A DNA stretch of 64,000 bases, from contig OZ287698.1 of assembly GCA_965649825.1 (NCBI GenBank), forward strand, positions 1,007,949 through 1,071,948, written 5' to 3'. This DNA comes from Penicillus capitatus (taxonomy: Eukaryota > Plantae > Chlorophyta). The translations under genes and the position numbers were made by a program. Below, in pieces: positions 18,201-23,053 of the stretch. The notes below the pieces were generated by a model. The model worked only from the letters and a program-made list of their open reading frames with translations. It was not told the DNA's origin and made no database searches. How positions within the stretch are numbered: position 1 is the stretch's first letter; each line of letters begins with the position of its first letter.

Positions 18201-19754
18201 TTTCCGCCCTGCTTCTCCCCAGAGAAGCCGAGGGTAAGATGATAGTCTCAAGTCATTGCGATAGAGTGGGGTATTGGCATAGATACACAGTTTGCCAGAA
18301 TTCTTCTATCTGATATCCAATCCTCAATGCAAAGCGAAGAGAAAGAAGCCCCAATCACATTCAAAGCATTGCGAAATCTCTTTGCCTTCTGCGAAAACGC
18401 CAAGACTGAAGCCATCAGTTCAGGTTTTCATCGATATCTCGTCCAGGCAACTGCAGAAGAACTACAGAAAGACACACTAGCCACAACAGGTGAACTGAAT
18501 ACTCTGCTACAGACTGCTGCATTCTCTTCCAGGTCTTGAAAAGGGCACAAGATGCAGATCTATGGACAGACGAAATCAGAAGCTCAGAAAGACGCAGGGC
18601 GCAGCAGAGAGTGCACGATCAGAGCTGGATTGTGGGAGGGATCATCGACGATCGCACGTGCTGTGTCTACTGCGCTGCCTGGCAGATGGAAATGCCCAGT
18701 GTACTGAAGCTCTGCTTGAATTGGACATCCTGGGTCTCCTCTTTCAGCACTGGCCTCAGTTGTCAGCGATCACAGGCAATAGCTGGCGGCAAACACTGCG
18801 ACTCATTACCTCCATGGTCGCATCATCACCTGAAAGAACACACAGTTTGATGAATCTCTGGAGAGGGAAGAAATGGAACATCTATCTGTGCTTGCTACAG
18901 GACCTCCATCCACACCACGTACCCAATCAGGATGAAAGAGGGATAACGTTTTCTGTTGCTCTTTAGCTCGAAAAATGCGCCGAGATCCTTTCATCCCTCT
19001 GCGTCTGTGCAATATATTGTGATGGTGCTGCCAATCTTGTCAGATACGGAGTCTTGCAGAAATGCAAAGAGCTTTTGGAACATGGCATCGGAAACAGAAT
19101 CCTCTGGCTCAGATCTGCCGTTTTCCAAGTGTGCTGTTCTCAGTGCAGCACATGTGTCTGACAGAATGCTCATCGATGATCCAGCTCCTTTGTCACCTCT
19201 GTGGTCACGAAATCGGAAGGAATGCAGTTTTGAATGCGGCGAATGCAAAGTCATTCGTGAATTTTATTCGCCGAGAGATACAACAGCAAGTCGTTGTTTC
19301 AAGTGTCTCTCACACTTTTAGTGGAATTTTTTACAGGATCCACTAGATGACTGCCTGCTTTTTGTGCGCAACTTATCCTTTTCGCGCAGCTTCTTGCATC
19401 ATCTACTGGCAAAACCGGATCTCCTCCAAGAACTCTTGCTCAAGATCACTCTATCGGATGCAGATGCCCTTACATCTCAGCGAATCTCGACCGCCACCCT
19501 GTGCACATCCATCTTGTCCATCCTCGTTTTTCACGGAGAGAAAGTGAGATCTCGCAACGATGGCTGCAACAACATTGCCCTTCTAGATCAAAGCCTTCAT
19601 AAACAATTACAAGAAATGGACTGTGTCCTTCGGTGCGACAATGGTCTATCTAAAGTCTGTCATCGATCGGCAGCTTCAGGACAGAGATCCGATAGCAGAG
19701 AAGGCACTTCATGGTCTCCTGCAGGAACTTTATCTCCTTCAGTCGCTTTTGTAG
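12246..19754 (+). CDS. RTTN: Rotatin (centriole/basal-body ARM-repeat protein), many exons
   Basis: N-terminus KKL|GHCISEIRIRAL matches the rotatin KLGH..EIR.RAL motif, and DFPPQVFVQK matches the rotatin DFPAEIFLQR motif. ~7.5 kb of Leu-rich helical exons, ending ...FHGEK|IKAF...LQSLL* at TAG 19752-19754. Confidence 0.8.
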
Positions 19755-22335
19755 TCGATCCAATGCCATTTCGATTGCCTCTCTGAAAGGACTCATATAA
19801 CTCCATCTCTATCATGTCCTCTTGTCCCAGGGAAGGAACTGAGTCTTCCAGGGCGGCGAGAAAATGAGCCATGTTGATTTCTGTTGCGTCCATGTTCTCT
19901 TCCAATGCTCGAATGCCGGCCTGTCGACAGACAGAGGCGATATCGGCGCCCGTATAGTGCTCTGTCCTTTCGGCAAGTTCGTCTGCGTCGACATCCAATT
20001 CGACCGACAGCGATCGAAACTGAATTTCGAAAATGGCCTTTCTGGCTTCTTTGTCTGGCGGCGGGACCAAGATGAGTCGATCCAGTCGTCCAGGACGAAG
20101 CATAGCTGGATCTATGAACTGCGGTTTGTTTGTGGCTCCAATCACAACGATCTGTCCACGATCGAGAATACCGTCCATTTCAGTCAGGAGTTGAGAGAGA
20201 ATCCGTTGTCCTTGAGATGTCCCATCGTCTCCTTGCGATTCCCGATGGCCCATCAATCCATCGACCTCGTCGATAAAAATGATACAAGGAGACACCTGAC
20301 GGGCACGCGAAAAGAGTCTAGCCACAGCCTTTTCACTTTCACCCACAAACATGCTCAGCAGTTCAGATCCGGCAACAGTGATGAAATTCATGCCCGTTTC
20401 CGTCGCAATGGCCCTCGCAAGAAGCGTTTTGCTGCATCCCGGAGGACCAAAGAGCAAAATGCCCTGCGGCGTCGACGTCCCCAACCGCTTGAGTGATGCC
20501 GAATGACGCAATGGCCACTCAATCGACTCTCGGAGTTGCTGCTTAATCTGTTCCACTCCACCAATGTCTTTCCATCTCACACGCGGCACCTCAATCTGCC
20601 ACTCTCTTAAACCACTCGGACATATCTGTGTCTTCGCACGTTCAAAATCGCACATCTCGATCTCCAATGCAGAGTTGGTTGCGATGCATCTTCTCAGAGC
20701 ACACAGTTTGGCTTCTCTGCTGAGGGCGGCGATGTCCGCAGGCAAATATCCATGAGCATTCGCAGCCATGTCTGAAATTTGTGTCGCGGACAAAGAGTGT
20801 TTGACGTTCAGGAGATGATGCCTGAGAAGCGTCTCTCTAAATGCCGGCGTCGGGACAGTCACTTCGATCTCTCGATCAAATCTTCCAGGCCGTCTTAGTG
20901 CAGCATCTAACATCTCGAGGCGATTTGTGGCGGCCAAAATGACGACGGGAGATCCTTCCAGTGCGTCAAAGGATGATAACAGTGTTGTCACACATCGAAC
21001 GCTCGCGTCATTTGCTCCGGTGGGCGTCGAAGCCATATGTCCACTTCCACGCATCGGAAGAAGGGCATCCACTTCGTCCAGAAAAATGAGTGACGGCGCA
21101 ACGGCCTTAGCAGCTGTCATGACACCGACCAGGGCAGATTCCGATTCTCCATAGTGTTCAGAGATTAAACTGGGACCATTGATCACAAAGAGATGCGCAT
21201 CGGAGGCTTTGGCCGCCCACGAGGCTAAAGATGTCTTGCCACTTCCCGGAGGTCCATAGAGAATGACGCCGCGAGGAGGAGTGAGACCCATAGAGACAAA
21301 CAAGGATGGCTGCATGAGTGGCAAAGTGATCAATGAATGCAGAGCTTTGGACAGAGGATCCTCAATGACCATTCTCTCTAGATCTGCACTGTCCAATGCA
21401 CGAATCCCTGACCGAGCTGCTTTCAGTGCTCCCATAACGCCAGCTTCCTTTCGGCTTCCTTCCATGTCGCGTTCAACGCTTTCTACCACCTTCTTCAGAT
21501 ACGTATCTCTGTTGGACGTGCCTTCTTCTGTTGAGACAGAAGTATCTGTGAACCGCCATTCGAAAGCTGTCACATCAGCATCGATCTGTGCCATCTCTGA
21601 GGGCCCCTGATCCGTTTGGAGCTGATCGACTTCCATCAGAATCGAGCAGCCGAGCAAGAGAATGGGAACAAGATTCTGCTTGAGAAGGAGCCGACCATTC
21701 AGCTGCTGCATCATCAAGGTTCGAAGGATTTCATTGTGTGATCCCTCCTTCTGCATCAGCTTCTCATGCAGCCACTGTTCTCTGTCTTCTCCCACCTTCG
21801 AAACGCACTGAACGAATCGCAGATGTAGTTTTTGGCAGAGAAGAGGTTTCTGGTCGACAGCGTGCACATATACAATGCTTCCGATCTCTGGGGAAAGCAG
21901 TTGAGCCATGAGGCTAGACGACAACTGAATCTGTCCCTTCTGTAGTTTAGCATTCGGCCAAATCTCGCAGCCTGCAACAAAACTGCCCATTGAGACATCG
22001 GCTTCGCATTTTGGCACTTTCCATCGCACAAGGAGGTTCTCCGGAGGGTTGTCGCGAATCATCCCAACGTCCAGCGAAGTCGGGGCGAAGCTGGACACAC
22101 TTTTCAAGGAATCTTCTCTGACAGCTGGCTGTGATCCCAACGAGATCAGTCGCATGTCACCGGCCTCCAGACTGGCAGCGTACATTGTCTCCGTTGCCAT
22201 CCACACACGGCCGTTTTCCATCGGCCCCGAAGATTTCAGTCGAGCCACTGCGATAGGCTCTGGCAAATGTGAAGGTCTCTCTTCATTGACTGGCTGTGGC
22301 GTCGGTCTCCTGTTCTTTTGTTTCTTCCGCGTCAT
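19660..22335 (-). CDS. AFG2: AFG2/SPATA5/Drg1-family (CIP111-like) double AAA+ ATPase, apparently intronless, ~891 aa
   Basis: D1 GPPGSGKT/DEVDA and D2 GPPGCSKT/DEVDG (family-typical GCSKT), plus two SRH motifs (ATNR..LD.ALRRPGRFDRE). The first in-frame ATG is at 22335 (MTRKKQKNRR); the ORF-track start at 22473 is a TTG. Confidence 0.9.
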   Translation of the reverse strand: MTRKKQKNRRPTPQPVNEERPSHLPEPIAVARLKSSGPMENGRVWMATETMYAASLEAGDMRLISLGSQPAVREDSLKSVSSFAPTSLDVGMIRDNPPENLLVRWKVPKCEADVSMGSFVAGCEIWPNAKLQKGQIQLSSSLMAQLLSPEIGSIVYVHAVDQKPLLCQKLHLRFVQCVSKVGEDREQWLHEKLMQKEGSHNEILRTLMMQQLNGRLLLKQNLVPILLLGCSILMEVDQLQTDQGPSEMAQIDADVTAFEWRFTDTSVSTEEGTSNRDTYLKKVVESVERDMEGSRKEAGVMGALKAARSGIRALDSADLERMVIEDPLSKALHSLITLPLMQPSLFVSMGLTPPRGVILYGPPGSGKTSLASWAAKASDAHLFVINGPSLISEHYGESESALVGVMTAAKAVAPSLIFLDEVDALLPMRGSGHMASTPTGANDASVRCVTTLLSSFDALEGSPVVILAATNRLEMLDAALRRPGRFDREIEVTVPTPAFRETLLRHHLLNVKHSLSATQISDMAANAHGYLPADIAALSREAKLCALRRCIATNSALEIEMCDFERAKTQICPSGLREWQIEVPRVRWKDIGGVEQIKQQLRESIEWPLRHSASLKRLGTSTPQGILLFGPPGCSKTLLARAIATETGMNFITVAGSELLSMFVGESEKAVARLFSRARQVSPCIIFIDEVDGLMGHRESQGDDGTSQGQRILSQLLTEMDGILDRGQIVVIGATNKPQFIDPAMLRPGRLDRLILVPPPDKEARKAIFEIQFRSLSVELDVDADELAERTEHYTGADIASVCRQAGIRALEENMDATEINMAHFLAALEDSVPSLGQEDMIEMELYESFQRGNRNGIGSTTKATEGDKVPAGDHEVPSLLSDLCPEAADR

Positions 22336-22517: not shown

Positions 22518-22553
22518 TCGCCACTGAGAAACTGTACGACAAACAGTCTCCGC

Positions 22554-23053
22554 TCAGAGACGTCGACCTCGTCGACCTCCTTTGCGACGCGTCGTGTCAT
22601 GAGGAATAGGCGTGACGTCTTCGATTCGACCAATTCTCATACCAGATCGCGCCAAAGCTCGCAGAGCTGATTGGGCACCGGGTCCAGGATTCTTTGTCCG
22701 ATTACCCCCTGTCGCTCGAAGCTTGATATGCAAGGCAGTGATGCCCAGTTCCTTTGAGGCAATGCGTGAGAGGAATGCAATGCCGAACGGTGTCTTACTT
22801 TGCAGCGAACGGCGACGTCCTGTGCTGCCAGCATCGCAGCGTAAGGAGACGATTCATCACGGTCTGCCTTGACACGCATACCGCCTGTGACGCGGACAAT
22901 CGTTTCTCGTCCAGAGAGATCAGTCACATGGACGAAGGTATCGTTGTAGCTTGCAAAAATATGGGCAACGCCGAAAACGTTTTCGCCTTCTTTGACAGTG
23001 GGACCAAAGAAAACGTCCTCCTCTTTCTTCGCCGTCTTCTTCTTTCCCGACAT
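22554..23053 (-). CDS. RPS14: 40S ribosomal protein uS11 (S14)
   Basis: [25 protein letters not shown]...[20 protein letters not shown]|[65 protein letters not shown]; one 47-nt GT-AG intron at 22752-22798. Confidence 0.98.

Follow-up and report, generated by a model that had tools for sequence, protein, structure and literature searches.

Abutting CMC4 and AFG2 genes in a green alga of Bryopsidales affinity: a probable bicistronic nuclear locus with RPS14 directly upstream

How is a nuclear gene expressed when its start codon overlaps the stop codon of the gene before it, and when a ribosomal protein gene ends just upstream of both? This question is raised by three minus-strand genes, RPS14 (uS11), CMC4 and AFG2, in a 64,000-nt stretch of the Penicillus capitatus contig OZ287698.1 (the window, in whose coordinates all positions are given), where the TGA of CMC4 and the ATG of AFG2 overlap in AAAAAATGACG. 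An original prediction had read the three genes as a candidate polycistronic locus, and on re-reading the minus strand the coordinates it gave for RPS14, the spacer, CMC4, AFG2, the ATGA overlap and the TGTAA motif inside CMC4 were all correct (Table 1). In our view a single nuclear mRNA of this green alga, which is allied to the Bryopsidales, probably carries both CMC4 and AFG2 as cistrons, the second being reached by leaky scanning.

The evidence begins with the conservation of the pair. For each relative the surrounding DNA was taken, the three genes were placed in it by tblastn and each junction was read, giving eight lineages: the window, L001, L002, L003, L004 (Bryopsis sp. KO-2023), L005, L007 and L009, with L007 being identical to L008, and L005 and L006 counting as one lineage. 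CMC4 lies directly upstream of AFG2 on the same strand in all seven lineages besides the window, Bryopsis and a Caulerpa-like contig included, and the gap between the two genes is between -8 and +5 nt in seven of the eight. It is -4 nt, with the ATGA kept, in L001, L002 and L007 as in the window, -8 nt in L005/L006 (ATGCCTGA), +2 nt in L003, +5 nt in L009 and +75 nt in Bryopsis; the earlier statement that there is no room for a 3' untranslated region (UTR), a promoter and a 5' UTR between the two genes is borne out by these gaps. Between lineages the dS of CMC4 is greater than 1 or incalculable (saturated), the synonymous codon identity of RPS14 is 0.45, and the identity of whole AFG2 falls to 42-56% with N-terminal regions that are only 26-42% identical. 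The window and L001 are the only close pair, being collinear over 12.9 kb at 83.8% identity. Judged against such saturated divergence, the recurring order, strand and near-zero spacing are not a product of chance.

In Bryopsis there is no RPS14 within 5 kb of the pair and the gene upstream of it is divergently oriented, so that to judge from this genome a CMC4-AFG2 unit can stand alone. The Bryopsis CMC4 (L004:4737-4925, GCA_030272585.1) is unannotated and sits in the apparent 5' leader of BSKO_04775. CMC4 adjoins AFG2 in Caulerpa too, as the 1013-aa gene model EP00210 g576.t1 joins AFG2 to the central part of CMC4 and to a PDH-E1-like C-terminus. The first cistron therefore falls into a blind spot of annotation, being missed (Bryopsis) or mangled (Caulerpa) by standard gene callers. 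No CMC4 was found within 6 kb of the AFG2 homologue of Chlamydomonas incerta. The CMC4 alignment, scanned against JGI metagenome contigs, gave 21 pattern sites and no relatives, a CMC4 profile search of a large protein collection had P0242, from the same species as L007, as its sole match, and exact-sequence look-ups of the window CMC4 and AFG2 returned no match.

Table 1. Genes and sequence motifs of the RPS14-CMC4-AFG2 locus, in window coordinates.
Feature	Position	Strand	Remarks
RPS14/uS11 exon 1	22799..23053	-	ATG at 23053-23051; splice model from an exhaustive GT..AG search, best fit to RPS14
RPS14 intron	22752..22798	-	47 nt, GT..AG
RPS14 exon 2	22554..22751	-	stop TGA at 22556-22554
RPS14-CMC4 spacer	22518..22553	-	36 nt, ATG-free
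CMC4 coding sequence (CDS), proposed first cistron	22332..22517	-	61 aa, seven conserved Cys; Pfam CMC4
TGTAA within CMC4	22483..22487	-	codons Cys11-Lys12; chlorophyte poly(A) signal motif; candidate 3'-end signal of the RPS14 mRNA
ATGA stop/start overlap	22332..22335	-	AFG2 ATG 22335-22333, CMC4 TGA 22334-22332
AFG2/SPATA5/CIP111-type double-AAA ATPase, proposed second cistron	19660..22335	-	uninterrupted open reading frame (ORF), 891 aa, intronless
TGTAA 3' of AFG2	19607..19611	-	49 nt past the AFG2 stop; candidate poly(A) signal of a CMC4-AFG2 unit

The family names given in the original prediction agree with the Pfam matches, the PDB profile matches and the alignments. The spliced RPS14 product of 150 aa matches Ribosomal_S11 at 7.6e-47 and is 81-91% identical to eukaryotic RPS14, the best named match being that of Caulerpa lentillifera at 91%; an intron is present at the same RPS14 codon position in L001, L002, L003 and L007, at a length of 41-50 nt. 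CMC4 scores 47.7 bits against PF08991 for a cut-off of 28.9, its profile matches human CMC4 (PDB 1hp8) at 5.8e-14, and its seven cysteines are invariant across seven aligned orthologues. The ATPase carries two AAA and two AAA_lid_3 domains and aligns across D1-D2 to human AFG2A/SPATA5 (residues 330-851 to 8rhn_K) and yeast Afg2 (residues 330-837 to 7nku_A). Over residues 34-565 the N-domain can be aligned to a CIP111-like protein of Amborella that bears PF26429, whereas CDC48 is alignable only from residue 332. The PF26429 (DPBB_CI111) model itself had no match in the window AFG2 at E <= 0.01, and is carried by the AFG2 orthologues P0001 and P0002 (weakly) and P0003. We accept an AFG2/SPATA5/CIP111-type ATPase on the basis of domain make-up and alignments. 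The relatives of AFG2 are, best first, metagenomic proteins at 99, 88, 56, 56, 50 and 46% identity, with Caulerpa lentillifera (EukProt EP00210) at 46% and Bryopsis sp. KO-2023 at 42% being the closest named ones, which agrees with the green-algal assignment made at the outset. CMC4 is a twin-Cx9C protein of the mitochondrial intermembrane space, and AFG2/SPATA5 is the essential ATPase responsible for the release of Rlp24 from pre-60S particles.

It could be asked whether the small ORF is expressed as a protein at all, or is a regulatory upstream ORF (uORF), the relic of a pseudogene, or part of a CMC4-AFG2 fusion made by frameshift, read-through or an unrecognised intron. The joining of part of CMC4 to AFG2 in Caulerpa and the missing annotation in Bryopsis are what such a view would expect; we nevertheless regard it as highly improbable. 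CMC4 is above its Pfam cut-off with all seven cysteines in place, and its dN/dS of 0.06-0.27, at saturated dS, indicates purifying selection, on which the original prediction depended; a non-coding uORF was rejected on these dN/dS values together with the Pfam and PDB evidence. A fusion by read-through or by a fixed frameshift was rejected as well, since gaps of -8, -4, +2, +5 and 75 nt give a varying frame relation that fits no single rule of this kind, and the Caulerpa fusion lacks the N- and C-termini of CMC4 and looks like an artefact of the predictor.

The start of AFG2 is genuine as well. Its N-terminus, MTRKKQKN, resembles MTRKKKKN in L007 and the annotated Bryopsis start MAKKKKKR, and in the window there is no ATG in the AFG2 frame upstream of 22335 before a stop at ~22483-22485. 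On these two grounds an upstream AFG2 exon, which had been named as a possible objection, was rejected. Between the window and L001 the three codon positions of AFG2 are 0.92, 0.95 and 0.77 identical, which indicates purifying selection on this gene too. The basic, nuclear-localisation-like MTRKKxKN motif (window 22335-22260) is found in the window, L001, L007 and Bryopsis and is missing from L002, L003, L005 and L009, where AFG2 starts ~20-25 codons further inward and still adjoins the CMC4 stop. In the same comparison with L001, third positions are 0.90 identical in CMC4 as against 0.77 in AFG2 and ~0.78-0.81 in non-coding DNA. The high value in CMC4 suggests an additional constraint at the nucleotide level, for example avoidance of ATG or an overlap with the 3' end of RPS14.

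How might ribosomes then reach AFG2? Seven of the eight lineages lack ATG altogether, in all frames, between the start codons of CMC4 and AFG2, where shuffles of synonymous codons expect 2.5-4.9 per locus (4.9 for the window CMC4; P = 0.002-0.04 each). The contexts of the two start codons differ in the same direction: CMC4 has a pyrimidine at -3 in six of the eight lineages and C at +4 in all eight (cgaATGc in the window, with C at both positions), and AFG2 has a purine at -3 in seven of the eight (aaaATGa in the window, with A at -3), so that the first start is usually predicted to be weak and the second usually strong. No conserved RNA structure or element resembling an internal ribosome entry site (IRES) was found over CMC4, the covariation term of the alignment fold being +1.7 and the single-sequence z being -1.28. 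As depletion of ATG is not needed for termination-reinitiation, its presence here points to leaky scanning specifically; a gap that stays so close to zero may be a sign of some reinitiation too.

We would thus anticipate that scanning 40S subunits meet the AUG of CMC4 first, usually in poor context, where some would initiate and make the 61-aa CMC4. The remainder would scan on through a CMC4 region kept free of AUG by selection and would initiate at the AUG of AFG2 with its purine at -3; where the two codons at the junction share bases or lie almost side by side, AFG2 output may be raised further by termination-coupled reinitiation. The unit would end at the TGTAA ~50 nt past the AFG2 stop. 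RPS14, the immediate upstream neighbour in one clade, would most likely yield its own abundant mRNA, ending ~17 nt beyond the TGTAA in CMC4 codons 11-12. For the CMC4-AFG2 mRNA two origins could be envisaged: transcription could begin in the last <=80 nt of RPS14 plus the spacer, or transcripts from the RPS14 promoter could in part read through. The set of natural junctions at -8, -4, +2, +5 and +75 nt would allow leaky scanning to be separated from termination-coupled reinitiation.

The poly(A) signals bear on the part played by RPS14 in this scheme. UGUAA is the poly(A) signal of chlorophytes, with a peak ~17 nt before cleavage sites, and is used in the ulvophytes Ulva and Acetabularia as well (PMC1868727). 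TGTAA occurs about once per 1.4 kb on the minus strand of the window, and it is found 25-64 nt past the AFG2 stop in the window, L001, L002, L003 and L005, i.e. in all five evaluable loci other than Bryopsis. The sense strand of the window AFG2 CDS has no TGTAA, nor is there any from CMC4 +36 to the AFG2 stop.

These observations bear on the view that CMC4 and AFG2 are simply two overlapping monocistronic genes, with the start site of AFG2 lying within the CMC4 CDS and the CMC4 mRNA ending within AFG2. Overlapping transcripts do occur in compacted eukaryotic genomes such as those of microsporidia and nucleomorphs, and the surroundings here are compact, with a desaturase-like gene ending less than ~250 nt before the RPS14 ATG. 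We find this arrangement improbable all the same. It leaves the ATG depletion of CMC4 unexplained, and with no TGTAA in the window between CMC4 +31 and the end of AFG2 there would be no recognisable 3' signal for CMC4. Furthermore AFG2 would have no leader, or one of a few nucleotides, unless the leader lay inside CMC4, and the junction stays within 8 nt despite large changes to the AFG2 N-terminus and the CMC4 tail.

RPS14 is directly upstream of CMC4 on the same strand in six lineages, at gaps of 34 nt in L001, -1 nt in L002 (TGATG), 9 nt in L003, 10 nt in L007 and 142 nt in L009 besides the 36 nt of the window; in L005/L006 the contig ends 59 nt upstream of CMC4. All six of these RPS14-linked lineages have TGTAA at CMC4 +31, and the two loci with no demonstrable upstream RPS14 do not, Bryopsis having TGC AAG and L005 having TGT CAC at codons 11-12. 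The motif lies 29-66 nt past the RPS14 stop in five of the six (66 nt in the window) and 172 nt past it in L009. Since this spacing resembles that of 25-64 nt between the AFG2 stop and its TGTAA, the caveat in the original prediction, that RPS14 may terminate inside CMC4, gains weight: the motif on which it drew is conserved, and the function assigned to it remains an inferred one. The RPS14 mRNA may accordingly end within CMC4 rather than form part of a tricistron. The correlation between TGTAA and RPS14, drawn from a few related lineages, is suggestive. It has been reported for algae that the upstream genes of exclusive polycistrons are without UGUAA (Gallaher et al., PMC7896298), by which standard RPS14, with TGTAA 66 nt past its stop, resembles a gene that has a 3' end of its own, placed within CMC4. 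When spliced RPS14 was used to look for contigs derived from transcripts, no spliced copy from this clade came up, and P0124, the nearest sequence, retains the intron and is genomic. The stretch before CMC4 that is free of ATG, in which a separate start site for CMC4-AFG2 would lie, is 56-86 nt long in five lineages, and the spacer between RPS14 and CMC4 is 0.81 identical between the window and L001, which is near the neutral level.

Several points weigh against a bicistronic CMC4-AFG2 mRNA translated by leaky scanning. Co-transcription of the two genes is something we infer from anatomy and conservation. The lineages are related and the per-locus P values for ATG depletion are not independent of each other; the L009 CMC4 does hold one ATG, out of frame and opening a 5-codon ORF, and CMC4 has a purine at -3 in L002 and L009. 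A first ORF of 61 codons and near-zero spacing would be equally expected under selection for termination-reinitiation. The TGTAA inside CMC4 is a further difficulty, as an efficient signal for RPS14 ought to cut short CMC4-AFG2 transcripts begun a little way upstream as well, a tension that would need promoter-proximal suppression or a weak signal. Finally the TGATG overlap in L002 means that a separate promoter and leader for CMC4-AFG2 must there lie inside the RPS14 CDS, and no extra synonymous constraint was found at the RPS14 3' end when it was examined for an internal promoter (0.42 against a mean of 0.45).

A tricistron would be another arrangement. The promoter of RPS14 would then drive all three genes, and cleavage at the TGTAA in CMC4 would turn the bulk of the transcripts into RPS14 mRNA. 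On the few that carried on to the poly(A) site of AFG2, ribosomes done with RPS14 would go back to scanning and start again at CMC4 or AFG2. In its favour, RPS14 is the upstream neighbour in six lineages, the L002 overlap leaves no intergenic DNA whatsoever, and the RPS14 3' end has no sign of an embedded promoter; the Caulerpa pair is likewise so near to a same-strand PDH E1-like gene that the gene model fuses them, and "incompletely polycistronic" loci with both monocistronic and polycistronic transcripts are known (Gallaher et al., PMC7896298). A tricistron nonetheless seems unlikely to us. With 150 codons and many ATGs RPS14 makes leaky scanning past it impossible, and a ribosomal protein mRNA with a 3' region of 3 kb would be a likely target of decay. 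Reinitiation after an ORF as long as RPS14 is normally very inefficient. RPS14 has a candidate poly(A) signal of its own, unlike the upstream genes of exclusive algal polycistrons, the L009 gap of 142 nt contains two ATGs, and the pair is found without RPS14 in Bryopsis and behind a PDH E1-like rather than an RPS14 part in Caulerpa. If it were true, a tricistron would tie a 60S-maturation ATPase to the transcription of a ribosomal protein gene, a link that is speculation.

A more specific form of this idea, which we hold to be doubtful, is that under the one promoter the poly(A) signal in CMC4 lets a fixed small fraction of transcripts read through, with reinitiation across the gaps of -1 to 36 nt. 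It would slave the capacity for ribosome assembly to the output of a ribosomal protein gene, and would imply translation 3' of a long ATG-rich cistron, which the leaky-scanning model of algal polycistrons disallows. Whichever of these holds, the abutment of RPS14 forces either a promoter and leader inside the CDS of a ribosomal protein or translation past a long first cistron, and both would be unusual.

We return to the bicistronic CMC4-AFG2 mRNA as the probable arrangement. Comparative evidence that lay outside the original prediction, namely conservation of the pair, ATG depletion, the asymmetry of start contexts, purifying selection and the shared AFG2 N-terminus, speaks indirectly for what was proposed there. 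Is there precedent for such a unit? Nuclear bicistronic loci have been described in green algae, examples being TOM22-like/SDHAF3-like and REX1-S/REX1-B (Gallaher et al. 2021, PMC7896298; Duenas et al. 2024, PMC11291117), and in Auxenochlorella and Chlamydomonas the depletion of ATG and the weak context of ORF 1 have been tied by experiment to leaky scanning (Duenas et al., PMC11291117), with some Auxenochlorella bicistronic loci also having overlapping stop and start codons (PMC11291117). CMC4-AFG2 resembles these loci in its small first ORF (in the known loci often that of a mitochondrial protein), much larger second ORF and very short inter-ORF distance, as well as in the depletion of ATG before ORF 2, the weak context of ORF 1 and the lack of an IRES-like structure. 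Collinearity is conserved among chlorophytes in both cases (L001-L009 and, by implication, Caulerpa), and UGUAA follows the last ORF only, which holds for CMC4-AFG2 and fails for RPS14 as an upstream cistron. It differs from them in having a highly expressed ribosomal protein gene next to it and a poly(A) motif within its ORF 1; moreover the known algal bicistrons are defined by a single mature transcript, capped and polyadenylated, that spans the ORFs (Iso-Seq, and one promoter marked by H3K4me3), whereas the case for CMC4-AFG2 is made from DNA. On DNA-level criteria it fits this class of loci, in another algal class and with an unusual upstream neighbour.

Neither PMC7896298 nor PMC11291117 names the pair in its main text, nor does the 2024 supplement, and no report of nuclear polycistrons in Bryopsidales was found in the literature searched. 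If the unit is confirmed, siphonous ulvophytes would join Chlorophyceae and Trebouxiophyceae as groups with nuclear bicistronic expression, and the known pairs would gain one that is deeply conserved and whose second cistron, AFG2/SPATA5, is both named and essential.

Other systems offer partial likenesses. The human CMC4/MTCP1 locus at Xq28 has CMC4 (p8-MTCP1) sharing its locus and 5' leader with an unrelated larger ORF (PMC8566464). In that case the ORFs are separated by alternative splicing with MTCP1 lying in a CMC4 intron, there is no stop/start overlap and the partner is not AFG2; the resemblance is a coincidence of family and not homology of arrangement. Caliciviruses, influenza B segment 7 and some fungal viruses use termination-reinitiation at AUGA or UAAUG, to which the ATGA overlap here and the TGATG of L002 are alike. 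In these viral systems the 40S subunit has to be tethered by an RNA motif further upstream, and the first ORF need not be free of ATG; here, by contrast, ATG is depleted from the first ORF, in which no conserved structure was detected, the tethering motif itself not having been searched for. In microsporidia and nucleomorphs an mRNA may end inside the next gene, as we propose for RPS14 in CMC4, but those genomes are far more compact, the window having introns, repeats and intergenic DNA, and their overlaps are thought to be a by-product of compaction, whereas the CMC4-AFG2 arrangement is conserved across saturated divergence. An operon resolved by a spliced leader, as in nematodes, tunicates and kinetoplastids, would need a 3' splice site between the cistrons, for which overlapping stop and start codons leave no room, and no spliced leader is known in green algae.

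A number of other features of the locus and window can be noted. The 142-nt spacer between RPS14 and CMC4 in L009 holds a 27-codon ORF (L009:594-677) whose stop is 2 nt before the CMC4 ATG (TGAGCATG), which is another near-abutting stop/start pair. Upstream of RPS14 on the same strand there is a multi-exon gene (23302-24740, -) with histidine-box motifs and a weak FA_desaturase match (2.6e-4), whose motifs HELIHK and NYIQHYGL resemble AlkB or a desaturase; this is the desaturase-like gene referred to above. A polypyrimidine tract at ~23152-23128 may mark the start site of RPS14. The ORFs downstream of AFG2 had no Pfam match and an Rfam scan of the window gave no match.

It had been remarked in the original prediction that CMC4 and AFG2 lack introns whilst neighbouring genes are rich in them. 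AFG2 is indeed intronless and multi-exon genes are present in the window, but other long single-exon ORFs are found there too. One of these, 30447-32708 (+), is an uninterrupted ORF of 754 aa that matches Beta_helix and Chlamydia-PMP repeats, and another, 37317-42098 (+), is uninterrupted over 1594 aa, contains repeats of 153/306 nt (38159-41019) and has an ORF of 1137 aa on its opposite strand. The two plus-strand ORFs resemble those of large beta-helix repeat proteins. The multi-exon genes include class I aminoacyl-tRNA synthetase exons at 53654-57836 (-), with tRNA-synt_1 at 2.8e-26 and isoleucyl-like by eye, and beside them a PP2C-like gene at 57913-58707 (-), with exons of ~350-650 nt and short introns. 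Perfect tandem repeats, with a match of 100%, lie at 5096-5217 (30 nt x 4.1) and at 6802-7171 (24 nt x 15.4), the latter being open in all six frames.

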